A DNA stretch of 64,000 nt from Chara braunii (Eukaryota > Plantae > Charophyceae), in contig BFEA01000037.1 in NCBI GenBank assembly GCA_003427395.1, positions 140,956-204,955 of the forward strand. The letters run 5' to 3'. A program made the translations under genes and the position numbers. Each line of letters begins with the position of its first letter. The first letter of the stretch is position 1. The notes under the pieces were generated by a model. The model saw only the letters and a program-made list of their open reading frames with translations, ran no database searches and was not told where the DNA came from. Below, in pieces: positions 1-62,581 of the stretch.

Positions 1-2
1 CG

Positions 3-728
3 GAAGATGGGACGCGGACAGATCTTGAGCCAGCATATCAAACCGAAATGCTGGAAGGGGAGGACGCGTTCCTTTGGATAGAGACAGTATGGACTAATGT
101 CAGCCTGACAAGGTTGTCGCCGAGTTTAATGGATTTGGAGTTCCGAGGGACAGTGGAAGCCCGGGGGTGGGTCTACTTGTCACAAGATGGGGAGAATGCT
201 ATGGTCATAGATTTGGCGCTCGGGAATACGTCGGACGAGTTGTTTAGGAAGGCAGAAGGGGATGTTGTATGGACTGCGTGTCAGCGGAGGGAAACGGAAA
301 TGGAAAGGGTAGATGTGCGGGTGGAACTTGGGGATAGAGAAAACGTGAGGCGGCCCGTCAGAACCATGCGATGTATGCTGCCTCCCTTTCTGGTGGATGC
401 GGTTTTCGGAACCCAGACCAAACTAGTACAAATATGCCAATCCATGACGACCCTCGGACTATACCAATGCGCCAGGCGGGACTTCTTTCGGTTGTCGGTA
501 GAAATGGGGCCGTTTGAAGGGAACTGGGCGGAGGAGCTGACTGAAATGTTAAACTGCCTTAGCACAGACAATGTCTTTGTCCCTAGCTCGGTGCATTGGG
601 GGATAGTCTACAAGAATGTGGCAGTAGGGGAGATATTCCTGAAAGGGGTGAAGGAATTGTTCTACAATGAAGAGGACGACTTCAGTAATGAGGACGAAGA
701 TGATGAGATAGAGGACTGGGACTTCTAG
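3..728 (+). CDS. Unknown protein, paralogue 1 of tandem three-ORF cassette; open from window edge, acidic C-terminal tail
   Basis: Frame is open from position 3 (EDGTRTDLEPAYQTE precedes the ATG at 48). Motifs WIETVW, GTVEARGWVYL, RVELG, LPPFLVDAVFG and GPFEGNWAEEL align colinearly with the next two ORFs. Confidence 0.65.
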   Translation, partial: EDGTRTDLEPAYQTEMLEGEDAFLWIETVWTNVSLTRLSPSLMDLEFRGTVEARGWVYLSQDGENAMVIDLALGNTSDELFRKAEGDVVWTACQRRETEMERVDVRVELGDRENVRRPVRTMRCMLPPFLVDAVFGTQTKLVQICQSMTTLGLYQCARRDFFRLSVEMGPFEGNWAEELTEMLNCLSTDNVFVPSSVHWGIVYKNVAVGEIFLKGVKELFYNEEDDFSNEDEDDEIEDWDF

Positions 729-785
729 GGAGGGTGACTTACTTAGAGAAACCGAGTGGACTGGTATTATGCAGGAAGGGAAAAG

Positions 786-1541
786 ATGACTAGAGAGGAA
801 TTGCTGACGGAATACACCTTCAAGGGATGGGAACCAAGGCGACTCGGGGGAGGAGTAGAGATGCCTATACCAACAGAAAACGAATTGAGAGCGACCACAT
901 GCGACTGGGTCGGGTTTGAGGTTACCCCGGGACTATCATATGTATGGATAGAGCGGATTTGAAACCCGATAAGGGAAGAGGAAGGTTGGGACGAGGTAAC
1001 GGAAGGCACAGTGGAATCGGTCGGAACGGTCGTTATTTTCGAAGACGGGTGGCGCCTATTTTGCACTATGATAGCAATGGGACAGGATCCGATGTGACTT
1101 CCGGGGGATGCAGAGGCGCGAACCCGAAAGGAAGGCAAGAGGTTCGCCAACGAGGGATGGGACGAAGTTAGTAGCAGAGTTGTGATGGGGGAGTGGAAGG
1201 AACTCAAACCTCCCAGCCTACGAACGACGGTTTGGGTGCCTGAGCTCGTGGCCGAGTGGTTTGGGGGTTTTGAGCACATCGTAAAAGTGGCCGATTCCAT
1301 GAAAGAAGTGCATATAGAGTGTGCCTGGCTGACTGAGGAATTTCATAAGACCTCGTTAAAATACGGGCCCTTCTACGGTGATAAAGCCTGGGAAATCCTC
1401 ACCATTCTAAGGATAGGTAACTATGACCGCCTAGAGGTGGACGCGGAGGCTTGGGACGCCATAGTTAGTCGGGAGGCGACGACCGCTCCATCCTACGTAG
1501 ATGATGTTTTTAAACTATTTGAAGCATTGTGGTTCGATTAA
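786..1541 (+). pseudogene. Unknown protein, paralogue 2 (two in-frame TGA stops)
   Basis: ORFs 756..962 and 1182..1541 share one frame, broken only by TGA at 960-962 and 1095-1097. Read-through gives WIERI*, GTVESVGTVVI, RVVMGE, VPELVAEWFG, GPFYGDKAWEI. Confidence 0.7.
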
Positions 1542-1793
1542 AGGTACTAGGAGAGCGAACGTCGCGGGGAGGTCGGAGTATGGAGGGTGCATGTAGACTA
1601 GGGTGTAACATAAGAAAGAGGCATGTACATTGGTTTAGCAGGGCATGTGAGGGGATTGAAAACAAGGGAAGATGTTCGGCCATTGTGGGCACAAATGTGG
1701 GACGTGTGACAAAAAAGAGGGAAGGGAACATAAGTGAGAAGTAAAACAATAGGAGGGTGGGCAGTTGCTGAAGAACGGGCCGTAATCCTTTCT

Positions 1794-1825
1794 TTTTTTT
1801 TTTTTTTTTTTTTTTTTGAATACAC
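1794..1825 (-). mobile_element. Extremely 5'-truncated poly(A) retro-insertion
   Basis: T24+GAATACAC flanked by 18-bp direct repeat CGGGCYGTAATCCTTTCT (1776-1793, 1826-1843). Confidence 0.7.
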
Positions 1826-1852
1826 CGGGCTGTAATCCTTTCTGTGTGGGCT

Positions 1853-2667
1853 ATGCAGGAAATCACCAAAACAGCGATGGCAACAAGACGTGTTCGAACG
1901 GTACGCCAGCCCCGGTACCCCGGACCACCTTGGAATAATGGCAGAGGGTGGGAAGTGTCCCTACCGTCGAGTCCCGACTTTCGGGGGTTCGACGTGGAAT
2001 GGCGGGCCGTTATCTTGGGAAGGAATAACGCCTTCATGATGGTGGAGTGTCGGTGGACGGGGATGAGATTCAACCAAGGGTCTGGGGATGATTTGTATTC
2101 CAATTTAGAAGTTACTGGGACTTTGTATCTACCCGAGATCGGCTGGCACGCACTTGGGGTAGGAATAGCCCAAGGCCACGAGCTGGCACCGGTCTTTCGG
2201 AGGGCCGCCCGGGTGTTGACGTGGATAGGCCAATCAATCAGAAGTAGGAGGAACGTGGACTTACTTACCAGGGTGGAAATGGGGGGCTGGAGGGAGTTCA
2301 AGGCACCAACGACCCCGCTGAGATGCCGGGTCCCCCGATTCATGATAGACCTCATCTTCGGGAGCCTCGCGAGGGTGCAGGATCTGGCAGACTCGACAAT
2401 AATCTGGGTAAACCACTTCTCCTATCAGACCATCGGGATATATATGACGTTGATGTGGAGCATGGGCCGTTCTGGGGAAACCGAGCCCATGAATTGCTGG
2501 AAGTCGTTAATATCCTGGTATTTGGGTTGCCGCGGCTAGCTTGGGCGGAATACGAACACATAATCCGGAGGGAAATCGAGATAGGGGAGAGTTATCTAGC
2601 GGGGGTGGCTCAACTGTTCGAGGAGCCTACCGAACCGGAAGGGCCACGAGGGCGAGAGCGGGACTAG
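1853..2667 (+). pseudogene. Unknown protein, paralogue 3 (one frameshift near 2420-2445)
   Basis: ORF 1844..2539 (MVECRW, SNLEVTGTLYL, RVEMGG, VPRFMIDLIFG) continues in ORF 2323..2667 (GPFWGNRAHELL...IGESYLAGVAQLF). Confidence 0.7.
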
Positions 2668-3338
2668 CACCCGGAGGCAGGCCAGTAGGGCAAATCAAGT
2701 ATAGTCAGCAACGTACAGGGGCGCACCGATGGAAATGGGGAAGGACCGCAGGACCGGACAATCAGAAACCATTACAGAATAAAGGGGGAGGGGTAGACCC
2801 CTAAGGATTGACATGGCCCCGGAGGATGAAAAAGGGAATACTGCTCGGGAAAACTTTTCCTAATGAGATGCCCAACCAGGATTCCTACGCGCCGGCGCGG
2901 CGAAACAGGGGCACTCTAAACGAGCCTGTTATGAAGGGAACTAAGTCATTTCTCTTAAGTAGGGAAGCAATAGGGAGATGGAAGTGGGGAGAAGGCTACG
3001 ATCCAAATAAAGGTAAACTGACAAAGCCGGGACCTTTGGAACCTAAATACCTCGCGCTGCGTGTCCTGGGGAATCCTCTGGTTTATGCAGAACTAGGCGA
3101 AATGGCGATGGAGGATGAGACAGATAACCGTAGGAGCGAAGGAGGACCAGGCTTAGGAGGCAGCGCCGTACAAAGCAAAGAAGGGCAGACAGATAGAGAA
3201 TCGATAAATCCAGTTGGTACCAAAGGGAACCGGAAGGAAATCTCCTCAAGGGAAAGCTCGGGGAAAGCCGGGGGAAGCAGGCAAGGGACCCACGAGACCA
3301 AAGAGGGCAGAAATAAGGATAGGACAAGCCCCCGGAAT

Positions 3339-4104
3339 TCAGAGCCCCTCCAGCAGTCCCGGAATCGTTGCCACCTTGGTCTGTTCTGGGCATATGAAGC
3401 CCCTCAAGTAGGGTCTGGTCCCTGCAGCCCAGTCCCCAACATCAGACTTGGGGTCATCCCCCCTAAACTTGTTGGTGGCAGGGATCTTGGGACCTCTCTG
3501 ATCCCCTGCAGCAACAGCAGCATAGGTGGGTTTGGCTGTGGTCTTTTGGGAAGGAGATGGTGAAGGGGAAGAATGGTGTGAACCAGAATGGATGGAAGAG
3601 GGAGGAGAGGAAGGTTTGGGTTTCGCTGAGAGGATAGGAGACAGGGGAGCAATCAGTTTGGTTGTTGTCAGCTGAGCAGTCAGATCCTTGATTGCTGTCA
3701 GGATCTTGGACTGCTGAACTGCCAGGTCATCCACCCTGCGCTCAAAACGAGCGATACGGTCATCCCACTTAGTGAAATAGGAAATGGTGCCAGAATGGCC
3801 CACTCCACCAAGTTCCTAGTCACCTGGGCACAGCGCTCATCAGACACAACTTTGCCTAGTTGCTCCAAGCCTCCAACAGATACTCCTGTCGAGAAGCATC
3901 TGTTGCAGCCTCTAGCTCAGCTGCCTCCTGCCGCTCAAGTTCTGCTAGCAGGGCCTGCTCCTGCTGCAATCTTTCTTGGATCTCCTTCTTCCTGCGCTGA
4001 GTAGCAGTCAGAGGTGTAGTAGGAGTGGAGGTAGAAGGTTGTTCACCTTCCACCTTCATGACCACTTCCACCTGTGGCTGCTGCTGAGCAGTCTGGTCCG
4101 CCAT
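3339..4104 (-). pseudogene. gag: Ty3/Gypsy gag, N-terminal part, frameshifted and truncated
   Basis: Coiled coil, Pro/Ser linker, then KIPATNKFRGDDPKSDVGDW...KVATIPGLLEG resembling the start of a retrotransposon capsid domain; lies downstream of a PBS on the same strand. Confidence 0.7.
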
Positions 4105-5628
4105 TTTCCTCTTTCAGAACACCAACAATAAATAAATAGTAGAGAGTATGCAGCGATGTACAGATCCCCTTCAGGCACTCAGAAATCGCTGCTAACTCAT
4201 GCACAGAAGTCGTGGGTGTATAGGCACAAACGGTTTGGGGTTGGAACTGTTTCTCTGGGGTCAGGGGTCAGACAGACAGTTAGTCCGGCAAAATCAGTCA
4301 CACGATTTCCTTTTATTGACCCTGCACCACACTGGAGTTAGTAAACACTGTCCGCTACTCTTCCAAAGAACACTAGATTTCCAAAGCCCACTAGAAAACA
4401 AGAGTTGTAAGTGGGAATGATAGAACATGGCAAGCATAGAGTAGAAAGGTCAAACAAGCAGAGCGATTCAGTCAAAGACCCTGAATCCTTAGCTCAGACT
4501 CAATTTTCGACCTTGATGACTCTGGCAGCCATACCCTAGGGTATGGCGAAGTACAGTATTCACTGTTTCCAGTGAAATACTAGAAATCCAATCAAGCGGT
4601 TCTGCAAGAATGACTGTTTTTGAGTTGTGATTCACTGGGGACAGGCAGAACTGAATTCTGACGGACAGAATTGAACTTATGACTGACACTAGATAGCACA
4701 GGCTATAATTAGATTCGGCGCAAAACTACAATTCATAGTATCACTACTTTTCCAGTGCAGGATTCACAATCTGAACATCCCAGATCAAGCGCAATACAGT
4801 ACAGCAGTCACAGAACAATTTTGGATGCAAAAGAGTCAACAGAGGGTGAGAGATGAGCAGAGGAAGATAGGAGAGAGATGGCTATGGCTGTCATGCAGTC
4901 GGCGATTTTCAAATCCAGTCACTGACAGATAGATAGACCATAACTACTGACTAGTCTAACCCTATCTGAATCGCTATACAGGTAGGTGCATGGAACGAAC
5001 TCACTTTCATAGTATCTGGCAAAGGTTGATGAAGATCTGGCTATGGCAGATTGAAACCCTCATTTCGCCAATTTCTTCCAGAGCTTCTTCCCCACCGTCC
5101 CACGCACAGAACTGCTCCCAACTATCCTCTTCAGGATCCTGAAGCGCTGCACCCCTTGATGTTAGATTCCCTGAATCTGACCCTGTGGCACCCAAATCGC
5201 CAACTGAAGAAAATCTCGCCAGAGGACCTGAGGTCCGCTGATGCTATAAATAGCCCCAGATGGGGTTATTTCTTCCTGAGATTGACACAGACTGTCAATC
5301 TACCTCAGCGCTGCTCAAGGATGAAGCCGCTCCACAATCCCTGAAGTCTCCAGGGGTAATTCGCCACTCAGGGGTAGTTCACAATACTACCCTCAGGGTT
5401 GGCTATGGCGAATTGACCCTGTTCTCGTCACTTCCAGACAAGCGCCCTGACAGGCTCAGTGCGCTTGCTCAGTGCAAGCACTGCACTCTTGAATCCACCG
5501 CTTGAAGTCTTCTTCCTTGCTGACTCAGCAGTGGGGAAGATGAATCGCCATGAAACTCTCGCCAGTATATCGCCAGGATGAAGAAGATGCCCTTAACACT
5601 CAACCCTCAGTGCTCCAATTCCAATCTC

Positions 5629-5640
5629 GCTCTGATACCA
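5629..5640 (-). promoter_or_regulatory. Primer-binding site (tRNA-iMet)
   Basis: Minus strand TGGTATCAGAGC, 2 nt after an LTR-type ...AACA end at 5643. Confidence 0.9.
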
Positions 5641-5642
5641 AC

Positions 5643-7079
5643 TGTTATGATCTTGGTTGTCTGACGATTTTTACAGCCACTCACACACACAGACAATCTC
5701 ATACACGCCCAGAGAGGAGACAGAGTCCAAACTGCACACAGATCAGAGTAGATAGCTGAAGCACAACCATGCACAGATGGGGAGAAGACACACAATGTTT
5801 CTCACTCTCTGACGATACTCCCAACAACCAATCACAAGAAAGAACATGCGAGAATACAATTGGAATACATACTGATGATGAGCCAAGTAACCAAAAATCG
5901 TTACAAAGTTTGTTCCAGTGTCTCGCCACTCTCAGAACCTCACACTCCACTCACTACCCTACACCCAGTTAGTAGTGCCTCCCAGAGGCCAGCGCCAGCC
6001 ACCCAGATGAAGAACAGGTCCTGCGATGAAGTCTTCAGTGCCGCTGAACAACTCTGACGAAGAACCGGCAGCTATGGCTGTCGCCACCCACATAAACTCA
6101 GTGGGGAGTCTCCACACAGCCCAGCCACTCGTAGAAACCCACAGGGGTTGATGCGCAGGGGATGCCCCAGCTATGGCAAGCCCTCAACAGGCTGGCTATG
6201 GCTGCTGTCCACGGTGAGGGTCTCAGGGTACCGCCTGCAGACAATCGTCGTTGCAACGCTCCTTGGCTCCAAACGCTGTATCGCAAAAATGAACTGCCAA
6301 AAAGTCCTAAGCAGTCCTACGCTAACCTACTTGTAGACTCTACACTACCCTAGCCTACCGCCTACCGGTACCGGTTCAGTTAGGGCCAGCTCGGCCTCTA
6401 CGAAACCGGTCCTACTACTGCACTTAGGGCTCAGGGCCACTTAGGGCCGGTAACCACTCAGCCCCTACTGCTGTTGGTAGCTATTTTTAGAATAGCGAGC
6501 AGCCCTCAGCGCAGGCCAAAAAAAACACAGCAAAATACACAGCATACTGGACATCCACAGCAAGCACACAGCACACTGTACAACCTCGCAAGTCAGTCTC
6601 GGCAGTCAAAATCAGCAAGTCATTGCACTCAAGTGTCTGGGACTCCTGCCCAGTACCCGTTGTTGCAAAGTGTATGTCCCAGTATCCTTTCCCATGGTCT
6701 GCTGCTGCTTGGGCCATCGGGCCTGTCTCTTGGACTCCTGGTCTGAATCAGGACTGACTCGTGGGACTATGACTGGACTGGGACTGTGGCTTTTGACTCA
6801 TTGTCGAACAGACATGACTTTCCATCGAGGAGACATGACCCTAACTCAGCTTTGAAAACTGTGTCCAATACCTGTTCGTGCAGGACCTGTTCGTGACTGT
6901 TCAAAATGACTTTCCATTTAATTATGGATGCGACATATGCCTTAGGAACTTTGTCTTTTGGGTTGCTGCTCGTGAATTAAGTTCTGGCTGACAGAGCCCC
7001 TCGCTGTTGGGCCATTCATCTGGGGTTTAATTCGTAAAGGCCCTTTTATCATGGTGCACATGGATGGAGTGATGATACA
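5643..7079 (-). mobile_element. 5' LTR of left-hand Gypsy element (outer boundary approximate)
   Basis: TG at 5643 adjacent to the PBS; non-coding with GACATGACT-type repeats; candidate CA end near 7079. A degenerate relative lies at about 8600-9330. Confidence 0.55.
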
Positions 7080-24062: not shown

Positions 24063-27000
24063 AGTCGGATCGCCCTGTCCGCGGCAGCCCCGCCTCTCCC
24101 CCACTCTCTCTATCTCGCTCGCTCACTCGCTCCCACGCCTGTTCTCACTTTCCAGCTAGAGTGCGCAGGTTTGTGTTCGTGTGACCAACGGGCGAGCTCG
24201 TCCAGTGCACTTGCGAGCGGTGGTGTGCTCTTCGCATTTCTCCGTGATCTGTTCCGACCGTGTTCCCATCTTTCCGTTCGAGCACACTCTCGATCTTCTC
24301 TATCACTCGGGAGCTGGCTTCAGCTTCATAGAGCCCAACTCCTGTGGATCTTTGGTCCAATCCCCACCTTAGGATGCAGTTCCCTCTGTCGCGCGTTCTT
24401 CCTTGCTTACTCACTCCCTGCCCCGCTAGGCCACGCAAGCTTTCCCCTTGCTCGTTTGCTGCTCACTGCTCCACACTCACTTCCTAGTGTTGGCAATCTG
24501 ATCCTAACTCACGCGCTTTATCACCATCTCCTGTTTGCGCTTGCTGTCTTCGCTAGTGCGCCCTCCAATCCGCTGCCTGCACGACTCTTCCCACTACCTC
24601 GCGCACTATCTTTTCGCTCTGTTCACTCCTTCGCAAGCTTTTTTACTCATATGATCTCTCGCCCTCGCTCACCGATCATCCCCACGCAGTTTCGTTCGAT
24701 AGCGGAAAGCTTAAGTTATATGAGCAAAATCAAATGTTTGAGTTCCCACTCGCGATTGATAGAGGGAAAGTCCCCCCTAGCACGTTTGTCCCTTGCCATA
24801 GGGCTATTGCCTCTCGTAACCGTGACCAGTCAACAAATCAGTGGCGATTGCCGCACACCAAACACACAGTCGACCACCAACAAGCACAAAACAAACTCGT
24901 CCACACCCTCGTCCACTCCTTCACTTGACAGGTGCTCGCACGTAGCAATATCATCACTTGCGATCTCCCTCGCTACGTGTATCTCATGAAGAAGGAAACC
25001 TTGCCCTTGAGTTCATCTGTGCATTCCTTCGGGTGCTGATTGAACCTCCCTATCATGTCCTTTAGGTGCACTAACGCAGTTGTTCGCTCCTGTTCGCTGG
25101 AACGTACGTTGTATGGGTACGTTCCGAATGCCCCAAATCCATGCTGGTGCACCTAGGGACCGACACACTTCTGTGTGTCAGCACCAGCAGTCCTCATTCG
25201 TCGATCCTTGTGGTTGGATGACCGCCAGGGGCAAGTCCCGATTCCTCCAATTGGCCCGTTGTTTGGCCTGCCCCTTTGGTGCACGATGTCCACCTTCGCT
25301 TGTGCGTGCGTTGGAGCGTGCTCTGGAGAAAGCTAGCACACACTGCCAGTTTCTCCGGTACCTCCCGGACCTCCCCTAAGAAGGGGCCAGTCCAGCTTAA
25401 GTACTTTGCTGGACCCAGCAGCAGCAGCCTCCACCCCACCAGAACCACCGAGAGTCGGGCACGCTGTCGAAAGACTTACAGCGCCTCAGTACCGTGGCAG
25501 AGAGCGAGCGTAGACCTGAGCCGGTTTCGGCCCTAAAAGGACCCAAGCAGGATCAAGCAGGCTCGGCTGTCAAGAAAACTGAGGCCCGATACCGTCCCAC
25601 TTCCAAGCCTAGTTTTAGAGCCCAGGCCCATACTTCGCTCCTTTACCATTATCGGGCCTGACCATCGAAGAACCCAAAATTTTATCCTTGTCCTCGTTTC
25701 TTCTCGCACGACTATCAAGGAGTAGACTTTTAACTTTCCCCCGACAATATTCCCACGCGTGTCCCCGAAGGCAGCAACTTCATTGTAAGCTCGTAGATTC
25801 CCACTCCTAGGTCGTTCGTCGGTCTGAATAAATTTACCACCCGTACGCCCGTCTCAGTAATTTTCGTGCTTCGATCATACACTAATTTCAACGCTGTTGC
25901 TGACATTTTCCTTATCCAAACTCGCGCCTCAACAGTCAGAATACTCTTTGTCTTGCGCGTCAGCTCAAGGTCTGGTGCACATTCCCCCTTCTTTCCCTCA
26001 CCTCTCCCTCGGCACCTTCGATTATTTGTCTTTTGTTGTAATTTTCAAATTCTCTCTGGTTATTGACAAGTTACCCATCTGCAGAAATTCCTTCCGCTAA
26101 GTTTGTCGAACCCGTTCTCTCAGCTTCCCGACTTCGACTTCTTCACATTCAACCTTGTTGCCGTCAAATCTCGATTTAAAAGGTGTTCAGCACGACTCTC
26201 GCGGTTGAGCTTAAACCTTGCCCGATGTTTTTCTCAAGGAAGTAAAGGGCGGCATAGGGCTTCAGTCGTCCGACAACGTACAAGGCGCTGACCTTCTTGA
26301 AGGCGCAAGAGCTTCTTGATCTATCTTTTTGATTAATCGACGACATACGTGTTAGGTTCTCACTTAGTCTTTCTGATTGCTATTTAGGACGGTTTATGTA
26401 TGCACACTTATTCTTTCTTATTGCTATTTAGGACAGTTTCTGTATGCATCGAATGGGTATCTTTCTCTCTTCCGGATGTCTGATCTCGCAGTGTGGATGC
26501 TTGGATGATAGTCTCTTTGTGTAGTTTCCTCGGTTGATCAATGGATGTTGCTCACATGCGCATGAAATGAAATGTATCGTCTCAAATTATATGCGTTTTC
26601 TCCATGGTTGTGATTTTGTATGGTAGTCGGAGTGAGATGCAGTGAAACTTCCTTCCATAGATCAGGCAGAGGAAGTTCCTAGCGAGTTAAACTCGTTGCG
26701 CCCTTCCACTTGCATGACGTAGGTGTGACTGTTGAGTGGTTTCGAAGTCTGTGCGACTCGGAGAAAGGAGTGCGTACGACACTCCCCTTACACACTTCAT
26801 CTCGCAAAGGAGCGGCGAGGGCGAGGTGACAACCGCATCCGTTCGCTGGCTCATTGCTGTGAATGGCAATGTGTGAGATAGATGTCTCCTTTGTTTTGTG
26901 TTAACTTTCAAGTTCCCCTCTGTGATATTTGTCAACACGTCTCGGTCTTCTGCTTCGGTATCGTACAAAGATCTTAGTCTATGTCCTGAGTTCCTATATA

Positions 27001-61798: not shown

Positions 61799-62251
61799 AC
61801 ACGCGGATTAACAGGAATAAGTGAAATCATGAAATTATAAGACACGTTGTGATCGGTAGGTTCCCCAACGGTCTGCGTACCCACGTGGCGGAGTTAAACG
61901 ATTCTTCCTCCGCTTTGGTTACTGACAATTAGTAAGGGGGTGAAGAGCGGTGAAGAGTGGAGATCAAGGTCAGCGCTCAGAGGGGTGACGAGGAGCGAAC
62001 ACGGAGAGAATAAGGAGACAGAGGAAGAAAGGAGGTGGGACGCAAGGGAAGCCAACGAATGGCCCGACACAGCACGAAGAACGAACAACGAACGACTCCG
62101 TGATGGCGGCTCTTCGCTGGGTTGGTCATAGCCAATAACGAAACACAATTCCCCCGCCAACGGAAAGGCCATGCGCATCTACAGGAAGCTCCCCGCTAAC
62201 GGTGTGTGAAAGAGAGTCAATCTATACTCGATATTTGACGACCACCCAACC

Positions 62252-62475
62252 GGACCAGTGAGCTATTACGCTTCCTTGAAAGGATGTCTGCTTCCAAGCC
62301 CACCTCCGGGTCGTAATTGCTCGATCACTTCCTTTCCCACAAAGTGATCGCTTTAGGACCTTACCGGACGATCTGGGCTGTTTCACTTTTGAATTTGGAT
62401 CTTAGCACCCAAAGTCTGTCTGCGCGATGCTCAGTTGCAAGTATTCGGAGTTTCCTTGGGGTTGGTCAGCTTTGG
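62252..62475 (-). pseudogene. rrn26: Organellar (most likely mitochondrial 26S) LSU rRNA fragment, NUMT
   Basis: GACCAGTGAGCTATTACGCTT...CTGCTTCCAAGCCCACCTCC...GATCTGGGCTGTTT...TTAGCACCC...GTATTCGGAGTTT is the reverse complement of bacterial-type LSU rRNA around the GTPase centre. Confidence 0.85.
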
Positions 62476-62581
62476 GCAGTTCGGAGGGCGCCCGTACTCG
62501 ATATTTGAAGACCACCCAACCTCGAGGAATTGCACTCGCACGGCAGTAGAATAAAAACACAAAAAGTGCAAACTACTACGT

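Follow-up and report, generated by a model that had tools for sequence, protein, structure and literature searches.

The window analysed here, a 64,000-nt stretch of Chara braunii DNA, opens with a cassette of three paralogous ORFs in tandem on the plus strand (3-2667). In alignments they are homologous over their full length, and three-frame translation displayed every conserved block quoted in an earlier note on this DNA. ORF1 (3-728, frame 3) is open, with its 5′ end lost at the window edge and approximately 40 codons absent. The ATG at 48 is not its true start, because the homologues begin approximately 40 codons farther 5′ than the window edge. The C-terminus of ORF1 is an acidic tail (last residues EIEDWDF) that was kept in nine homologues, and 14 Chara braunii proteins matched ORF1 at 65-86% identity. 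Annotated homologues of the cassette ORFs were 226-317 aa long. In the spacer between ORF1 and ORF2 (729-785, 57 nt), a conserved TRTGCAG|G motif lies 12-14 nt 5′ of the ORF2 ATG; it resembles a splice acceptor and is taken here as a putative one.

ORF2 (756/786-1541, plus strand, frame 3) is a pseudogene in the window, with two TGA stops (960-962 and 1095-1097) at positions where other copies have Trp codons. Both positions were Trp in copies L003 and L002, and the first was also Trp in L006; L003 keeps ORF2 intact (10888-11643). The spacer between ORF2 and ORF3 (1542-1843) is a remnant after the loss of a fourth gene, ORFx, and the deletion junction (approximately 1668/1828, equivalent to L003 11771/12803) is common to copy L001. 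The same spacer contains a 50-nt insert (T25 plus GAATACAC) between 18-nt direct repeats (1776-1793 and 1826-1843). ORF3 (1844/1850-2667, plus strand) is broken: compared with L003, L001, and L007 it lacks one nucleotide near 2450 and so passes from frame 2 into frame 1. Copy L007 (assembly GCA_003427395.1, contig BFEA01000181.1, reversed range 2336704-2366960) keeps ORF3 intact (12591-13424; basic protein, pI 9.0), and an intact example of each cassette ORF is known among the copies. The earlier note had described three paralogous ORFs, two stops in ORF2, one frameshift in ORF3, and 57 nt between ORF1 and ORF2; translation, BLASTP, and the other copies bore out this description.

Downstream of ORF3, a non-coding spacer (2668-3101) colinear with L003 and L004 leads to the gag of the element itself, of which the first 81 codons are present (3102-3344, plus strand). 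This low-complexity N-terminal part continues into the Retrotrans_gag region in L003, L004, L006, and L007. The window copy breaks at 3344/3345, after the start of its own gag (approximately 3102), and is joined there head-to-head to a truncated gag-like fragment on the minus strand (3345-4104). The fragment lies outside the element and belongs to another Chara repeat family; it was 56% identical to Chara protein P0076 and had no Pfam match, and the minus-strand gag-like ORFs of this region (3339-4104) had no match in L001-L006. The junction interrupts both gag ORFs, the element's own on the plus strand and the foreign one on the minus strand.

The paralogy of ORF1, ORF2, and ORF3 exceeds chance in protein comparisons. 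BLASTP of ORF1 against ORF3 gave 1e-14 for the N-part and 2e-11 for the C-part; the C-part of ORF2 matched that of ORF3 at 5e-8 and ORF1 at 0.006, and tblastn of ORF1 against the window gave 1e-7 at 1005-1520. The fourth paralogue, ORFx, was found in other copies and is missing (deleted) in the window, which shares the three-gene variant with L001. The ancestral cassette is reconstructed as four genes in the order ORF1-ORF2-ORFx-ORF3. The tree resolved four clades (support 99-100), with both element lineages within each clade, and serial duplication of the cassette genes was shown to predate the split of the sampled element lineages. Each ORF had its own ATG and the same stop in every copy; the spacers did not align as coding sequence, and some were short (57 and 85 nt). 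In Logan contig L008, an ORF1-like tail is followed, after a spacer of 66 nt, by an open ORF2-like gene (36% identity), and P0066, a remote member, has a gag-like ORF 240 nt downstream of it.

The cassette was present in eight Chara braunii copies. In L003, L004, L006, and L007 it lies upstream of gag-protease-RT-RNase H-integrase on the same strand, and the colinearity of these four copies extends from over 10 kb 5′ of ORF1 into gag-pol, which supports the earlier proposal of a retrotransposon-borne accessory gene family. ORF3 was followed by the gag start, never by flanking DNA, in 6/6 informative copies. In L004, Pfam searches located RVP/gag-asp_proteas (14784-16613), RVT_1 (16667-17641; 1.9e-11), RT_RNaseH_2 plus Integrase_H2C2 (17620-19200; 2e-19 and 1.2e-14), and, 3′ of Integrase_H2C2, rve_3 and SH3_Tf2-1; RVP scored 4.7e-4 in the L004/L007 searches and rve 2e-5 in L007. 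The pol order (PR-RT-RNase H-integrase, with integrase after RT) was that of Ty3/Gypsy elements (Metaviridae). Retrotrans_gag matches (E = 3.6e-4, 21.1 bits in L004; E = 1.1e-3, 19.6 bits in L007) fell below the gathering score of 24.1 bits; the position and motif of this gag candidate fit a capsid-like domain upstream of pol.

The LTR start (TGTGTCGGGACTGG) was located on the 5′ side at L005 495 and on the 3′ side at L001 20294 and L007 26941, and both 3′ LTR starts were preceded by a purine tract (GAGTGGGGGGAA). The LTR starts approximately 10.1 kb upstream of ORF1. No LTR 3′ end, primer-binding site, or target-site duplication was found in the loci, and no further LTR 3′ end in the loci or the window; the initiator-Met primer-binding motif was absent, and a search for a terminal inverted repeat matching the LTR start found none. 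A candidate primer-binding site, TGG(G)TGCACCA, lies near L003 9000 and may resemble the complement of the 3′ end of plant tRNA-Gly(GCC); no tRNA-Gly gene turned up in the loci. Two features begin approximately 1 kb upstream of ORF1, as an LTR/leader boundary would predict: a series of highly conserved non-coding blocks and the homology with the divergent copy L002. Indirect evidence of this kind places the cassette in the internal region, between the 5′ LTR and gag. We infer an LTR of approximately 9-11 kb and a whole element of approximately 40 kb. Positions 3-3344 of the window probably represent the 3′ part of a leader, now dead, from a giant plus-strand Ty3/Gypsy element of Chara that carries a sense tandem accessory cassette before gag. 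The family may be inactive today, because 0/8 copies have every cassette ORF intact.

In-frame dN/dS of the cassette ORFs ranged from 0.07 to 0.32 (ORF1, 0.07-0.32; ORF2, 0.08-0.23; ORF3, 0.10-0.23), in pairwise comparisons of transposable-element copies that mix selected and post-insertion changes. Shifted frames gave 0.6-2.3, and gag, RT, RH, and INT of the element gave 0.07-0.24. Between lineages with saturated synonymous divergence (dS > 1.4), dN/dS was 0.07-0.17, with ORF order and reading frames unchanged. Substitution patterns thus showed the cassette genes to be held by purifying selection about as strict as that on pol. No DNA-level repeat was found between the window ORFs, only short chance matches; together with the dN/dS values, this agrees with the earlier suggestion of selection at the protein level.

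The cassette proteins (approximately 235-285 aa) are soluble, have no transmembrane segment, and combine an alpha/beta domain at the N-terminus with a C-terminal half that is helical. ORF3 encodes a basic protein, and the other three genes (ORF1, ORF2, ORFx) encode acidic ones. When 1.84 billion representatives were searched with a profile, 64 relatives and no known host or transposable-element family were returned. Of the 20 relatives whose source was checked, 19 came from Chara braunii and one from a Logan run, and none was a land-plant protein. Many of the 64 matches were gene models far longer than a single cassette ORF, and these look like fusions of cassette ORFs with other sequence: six of the long models bear UniRef names indicative of gag, protease, or integrase domains, and one matched model was fused to a kinase.

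No Pfam family rose above noise for any piece of the cassette ORFs, and Pfam gave nothing for P0066 or its gag-like neighbor. No single stretch passed in the PDB profile search; its only candidates, designer "Pizza" propellers, were rejected as noise, a weak 40-residue match summed over six identical blades. AlphaFold models had a mean pLDDT of 50 for ORF1 (12 rows) and 63 for ORFx (21 rows; confident only at residues 10-110). Fold searches stayed within background with Foldseek against PDB (best E = 0.24), BFVD (best E = 0.03), and VIA-align wide (best Z = 6.0 against a stated background of 7-8; best for the N-domain, chimallin, Z = 5.8), and the highest ESM Atlas feature score was 0.79. A gag-derived origin, prompted by the GPFxGN..A.EL motif, was also rejected (hhalign against the element's own gag, probability 0.1%). 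Comparing the A4 profile with P0066 by hhalign was circular, P0066 being a row of A4, and the result was not used. A complex prediction for ORF1 plus ORF3 of L007 scored 0.00, which is evidence neither way. The cassette proteins are an orphan two-domain family whose fold was matched by no tool, in line with the unrecognized fold reported earlier.

The earlier note had read the cassette as antisense accessory genes of a minus-strand LTR element, with its gag at 3339-4104 and the cassette between integrase and the 3′ LTR; this would be an arrangement of the Retand/Grande type. A minus-strand gag-like ORF does face the cassette, and plant elements are known to have antisense ORFs between pol and the 3′ LTR (PMC7264820). 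However, the minus-strand ORFs were missing from all six loci searched (L001-L006), both gag ORFs are interrupted at 3344/3345, and a gag running from 4104 to 3339 would put pol over the cassette rather than place the cassette after integrase. The four full copies, with the cassette 5′ of gag-pol on the same strand, refute this reading, to which we give almost no credence. The antisense impression arose because an unrelated minus-strand gag-like fragment of another repeat family abuts the broken cassette. Thus, of the earlier overall interpretation, the element-borne, selected gene family of orphan fold stood, and the antisense orientation, the position after integrase, and the assignment of the minus-strand gag to the element did not.

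Three further explanations concern the origin and placement of a sense cassette. The LTR of MMTV carries the sag gene, and the Chara cassette might likewise lie within a very long LTR (at least 13 kb) and so occur twice per element. The LTR start approximately 10.1 kb 5′ of ORF1, an LTR 3′ end that was never seen, and the lack of a canonical primer-binding site and terminal inverted repeat are compatible with this; however, 3′ or solo LTRs would end in flanking DNA, whereas ORF3 ran on into gag in all six informative copies (a chance of approximately 1/64 under equal sampling), and the L002 homology and conserved non-coding blocks start only approximately 1 kb upstream of ORF1. We consider this placement unlikely. 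That the genes are a host family captured by transduction, a decaying passive cargo with no role for the element, would agree with their dissimilarity to any transposable-element protein and with some ORFs being broken in 8/8 copies. It is very unlikely given that order and frames were kept at dS > 1.4 with dN/dS of 0.07-0.17, that many of the 64 matches are long gene models, six of them with UniRef names pointing to gag, protease, or integrase, and that no free-standing host paralogue was seen. The short spacers and end-to-end homology of the units could also suggest one large upstream polyprotein of repeated domains, later split by stops. An individual ATG and an identical stop for every unit in every copy, spacers not alignable as coding sequence, and annotated homologues of only 226-317 aa make such an origin highly improbable.

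For the preferred reading, a sense cassette between the 5′ LTR and gag, the genes are kept about as strictly as pol, from which we infer that they help the element itself to propagate. The proteins would be expressed from the genomic RNA that the LTR drives, or from sub-genomic products of that RNA, and would assist replication as accessory factors, associated with the particle or RNP or linking the element to host factors as adaptors. Plain scanning is excluded by the four long ORFs before gag, and splicing, reinitiation, or shunting must therefore be needed to express gag-pol. A conserved donor-like site, GAG|GTATGG, was observed in the leader (L003, approximately 9600). A more specific model is tentative, and we hold it to be possible rather than probable: this green-lineage Ty3/Gypsy element would produce four two-domain paralogues (three acidic and one basic) from one LTR-driven RNA, either by splicing from the GAG|GTATGG leader donor to the acceptor-like TRTGCAG|G before the ORFs or by reinitiation, in the style of complex retroviruses and caulimoviruses, and the proteins would form a hetero-oligomer required for replication or silencing evasion.

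Reviews credit LTR retrotransposons with no more than one or two additional ORFs (PMC6431247, PMC7264820). With a duplicated four-gene cassette in an element of an inferred 40 kb or so, the giant Gypsy element of Chara would rank among the most gene-rich retrotransposons described, and it poses the question of how a eukaryotic retroelement translates gag-pol behind four long upstream ORFs. The conserved acidic-aromatic tail of ORF1 is a possible handle for a host partner, and the fusion-like gene models flag annotation errors in the Chara braunii proteome. We found no paper on extra ORFs of Chara retrotransposons.

In Caulimoviridae such as CaMV, a polycistronic pregenomic RNA carries closely packed accessory ORFs before the capsid gene. 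By analogy, the Chara element would face the same translation problem, with accessory cistrons before gag/CP and pol on one strand, but it differs in having LTRs and integrase; in Pfam and BFVD searches, the cassette proteins showed no similarity to movement, transmission, or virion-associated proteins. With regard to VANC-like anti-silencing proteins, Pfam and the profile search gave no match outside the cassette family. Coding capacity beyond gag-pol is also found in the giant Burro Gypsy elements of planarians and in complex retroviruses (PMC6431247), and the Chara element is likewise gigantic with accessory ORFs; however, the extra domains of Burro are recognizable host-like modules inside the polyprotein, whereas those of Chara are separate ORFs of one orphan family. 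Retand, Grande (gene23), and RIRE2 are plant Gypsy elements with orphan accessory ORFs, as in Chara, but these are antisense and located between pol and the 3′ LTR (PMC7264820), in contrast to the sense cassette 5′ of gag.

The closest likeness in position is to Ogre ORF1 and to ORF0 of Retrosat2, RIRE3, and RIRE8, sense extra ORFs of unknown role upstream of gag-pol; Ogre/Retrosat2-type ORFs are lineage-restricted, evolve faster than pol, and occur in unusually large elements with long LTRs (PMC6431247; PMC3485330). The Chara cassette is likewise sense, 5′ of gag, and in what is probably a large element with long LTRs. The profile search of the representatives, which returned only Chara-type matches, detected no sequence relation to Ogre ORF1 or Retrosat2 ORF0. 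Ogre has LTRs of 1.9-6.5 kb and a length of 16-25 kb, compared with the inferred 9-11 kb and 40 kb in Chara, and Ogre and Retrosat2 carry one or two such ORFs, whereas Chara has four paralogues by tandem duplication. We read the locus, by analogy, as a lineage-specific accessory-gene cassette akin to Ogre ORF1 or Retrosat2 ORF0, yet multiplied.

Three-frame translation of window positions 1-2900 gave three plus-strand ORFs. ORF1 (3-728, +) was open up to the window edge, and its homologues start ~40 codons further upstream. ORF2 (756/786-1541, +) carried TGA codons at 960-962 and 1095-1097, both TGG to TGA changes, and ORF3 (1844/1850-2667, +) changed from frame 2 to 1 at a 1-nt deletion near 2450. 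BLASTP between pieces supports the interpretation of the three as paralogues (ORF1 versus ORF3 N-part, E 1e-14; ORF1 versus ORF3 C-part, E 2e-11; ORF2 C-part versus ORF3 C-part, E 5e-8; ORF1 versus ORF2 C-part, E 0.006), and an end-to-end alignment was obtained for the full ORF set. Every block quoted in the earlier note was recovered, and, as it had stated, no DNA-level repeat linking the ORFs was found. At 1776-1843, an 18-nt direct repeat (CGGGCYGTAATCCTTTCT) was observed on both sides of a 50-nt insert (T25 plus GAATACAC) missing from copy L001; viewed on the minus strand, this insert reads as 8 nt followed by a poly(A) tail, with the repeat as target-site duplication, a putative LINE-type retroposition with extreme 5′ truncation.

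ORF1 matched 14 proteins, all of them Chara braunii "hypothetical protein CBR_g..." (65-86% identity). The seven loci fetched around ORF1-matching genes (L001-L007) had one DNA family in common, which the window matched at 83% in L001 (over 3-2948) and as far as 3344 in L003 and L004. L003, L004, L006, and L007 were colinear on one strand through >10 kb upstream of ORF1, the cassette, and 6-8 kb downstream. Downstream of the cassette and on its strand, an ORF resembling gag (Retrotrans_gag with E 3.6e-4 and 1.1e-3, both short of the gathering score) was followed by an aspartic protease, RT (E 1.9e-11), RNase H (E 2e-19), and integrase (Integrase_H2C2, 1.2e-14; rve, 2e-5; SH3_Tf2-1), a gene order that is Ty3/Gypsy. 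Thus, the cassette is sense and 5′ of gag in these four copies, and the proposal that it runs antisense to a Gypsy element did not hold.

The antisense reading is explained by a junction in the window copy. There, ORF3 was followed by a 434-nt spacer and then by gag, whose first 81 codons were present (ATG ~3102), and similarity to L003 and L004 stopped entirely at 3344/3345. The next stretch (3345-4104, −) encoded the N-terminal portion of a gag-like protein that belongs to a different repeat family of Chara (56% identity to the Chara protein P0076); its ORFs, a truncated pair with the motif KFRGDDPKSDVGDW, had no match in L001-L006 or in Pfam. The junction truncates both gag ORFs, which are joined head-to-head, and this contact arose by rearrangement, nesting, or an assembly join and is no structure of the element. 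Elsewhere in the window, Rfam matched a eukaryotic LSU rRNA fragment of 212 nt (23420-23631, −; 160 bits) and a 386-nt bacterial-type LSU rRNA fragment (62172-62557, −; 88 bits), which could be an organelle-derived insert.

A fourth paralogue, ORFx, was located between ORF2 and ORF3 in L002, L003, L004, L006, and L007. The same ~1-kb deletion removed it from the window and L001 (window 1668/1828 corresponds to L003 11771/12803); therefore, the three-gene form is a derived variant present in at least two copies. Each gene was found intact: ORF1 in many copies (226-317 aa in annotated homologues), ORF2 at L003 10888-11643 (251 aa), ORFx at L003 12027-12734 (235 aa), and ORF3 at L007 12591-13424 (277 aa). 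All four were open together in none of the copies.

The LTR start (TGTGTCGGGACTGG) was found in three places, preceded by unrelated DNA at L005 495 and by the purine tract GAGTGGGGGGAA at L001 20294 and L007 26941. It lies ~10.1 kb upstream of ORF1, and the two LTR starts of L007 are ~30 kb apart, an approximate span that includes a LINE fragment (apurinic-endonuclease-like ORF, 22641-23033, +) and an assembly gap (run of N, ~25400-26150), both between integrase and the 3′ LTR. ARAGORN reported a tRNA-Leu-like sequence at L007 2144-2229 (+), within the presumed 5′ LTR region. The 10 kb upstream of ORF1 contained tandem arrays with units of ~712 and ~91 bp (in L001, at 27-1437 and 2677-6300, a tandemly duplicated 712-bp unit and long stretches of ~91-92 bp units); such repeats between LTR start and cassette were also present in the upstream regions of L003-L007, with lengths varying by copy. 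The 3′ boundary of the LTR is most likely ~1 kb upstream of ORF1, because both the homology with L002, a divergent copy, and a series of strongly conserved non-coding blocks begin there. With this boundary, the LTR would measure ~9-11 kb and the element ~40 kb. The cassette is probably internal and not contained in the LTR, since the gag ORF start came after ORF3 in all six informative copies (window, L001, L003, L004, L006, and L007), and 3′ or solo LTR copies would end in flanking DNA.

Selection was estimated as dN/dS (Nei-Gojobori) in the true frame and, for control, in shifted frames. All pairs of the four cassette genes gave 0.07-0.32, versus 0.6-2.3 in shifted frames, which bears out the suggestion of protein-level selection; gag, RT, and RH-INT of the same copies gave 0.07-0.24. 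Between the two element lineages, nonsynonymous divergence was approximately twice as high in the cassette as in pol (0.2-0.33 vs. 0.08-0.16). In a maximum-likelihood tree, with broken ORFs read through with X, each of the four genes formed one clade (support 99-100), and ORF2 and ORFx were sister clades. Both lineages were represented in every clade, so the duplications pre-date the lineage split. The cassette belongs to the element, lies upstream of gag in sense orientation, and is under purifying selection; overall, we consider it quite probable that a giant Gypsy element carries it as an accessory cassette.

Searched with a profile, 1.84 billion representatives yielded 64 proteins at E ≤ 1e-3, many of them long gene models. 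Among 20 matches looked up from the best and weakest, 19 were Chara braunii proteins, and the UniRef names of six indicated gag, protease, or integrase domains. One, P0014 (Chara braunii CBR_g52611), was a kinase gene model that ends in the last ~90 residues of an ORF1 copy (EDWDF tail included); either the annotation is chimeric, or a fragment of the element was exonised. The remaining match, a 1349-nt Logan contig (L008, run ERR14794633), was, among these 20, the sole family member from outside the Chara braunii assembly. It encodes an ORF1-like C-terminus whose acidic tail ends in ELWDRDW, a 66-nt spacer, and an ORF2-like gene (36% identity to L003 ORF2, E 2e-50), both frames being open; thus, the order of the genes has persisted over a far larger divergence. 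In another element, a remote member, P0066 (profile A2, E 7e-9), stood by itself with a gag-like ORF 240 nt downstream, which suggests that the cassette started from a single upstream ORF.

The fold was, as before, not recognised: Pfam had no match for the cassette ORFs, and Foldseek, VIA-align, and BFVD gave background-level matches only. A gag-derived origin was rejected, the profile comparison with the element's own gag being negative. The cassette proteins had no transmembrane segments; pI was 4.4-4.8 for ORF1, ORF2, and ORFx and 9.0 for ORF3. The ORF1 C-terminus always consisted of an acidic run followed by E(I/V)E(D/E)WDF. The better AlphaFold model showed a confident N-terminal domain (three strands, two helices, one strand) and a helical C-terminal half of low confidence.

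The cassette proteins would serve the replication cycle of the element and would be made from LTR-driven RNA. Scanning ribosomes would not get past four long ORFs to gag, so splicing, reinitiation, or shunting must take part in expression. A 75-nt almost invariant non-coding leader block with a donor-like GAG/GTATGG was located ~400 nt upstream of ORF1 (L003 9550-9625, with equivalents in L001-L007), among other conserved blocks across L003 9008-9800, and TRTGCAG/G motifs stood a short way before ORF2 and, in the window and L001, ORF3. Block and motifs are compatible with splicing, without being evidence for it. Published gene models splice from the GAG/GTATGG site. A specific model of hetero-oligomers with complex expression appears rather unlikely to us.

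No paper on extra ORFs in Chara retrotransposons was found. The nearest known elements, Ogre and Retrosat2/RIRE3/RIRE8, each have a single sense ORF upstream of gag; these ORFs are orphan and faster-evolving than pol, in large elements with long LTRs (PMC6431247; PMC3485330). The cassette resembles this type in its orphan ORFs, evolving faster than pol, and in its presumably large element with a long LTR, whereas the antisense extra ORFs of Retand, Grande, and RIRE2 (PMC7264820) differ from it in strand and position. New in Chara are the gene number, the way in which the genes arose, by tandem duplication, and the size inferred for the element.
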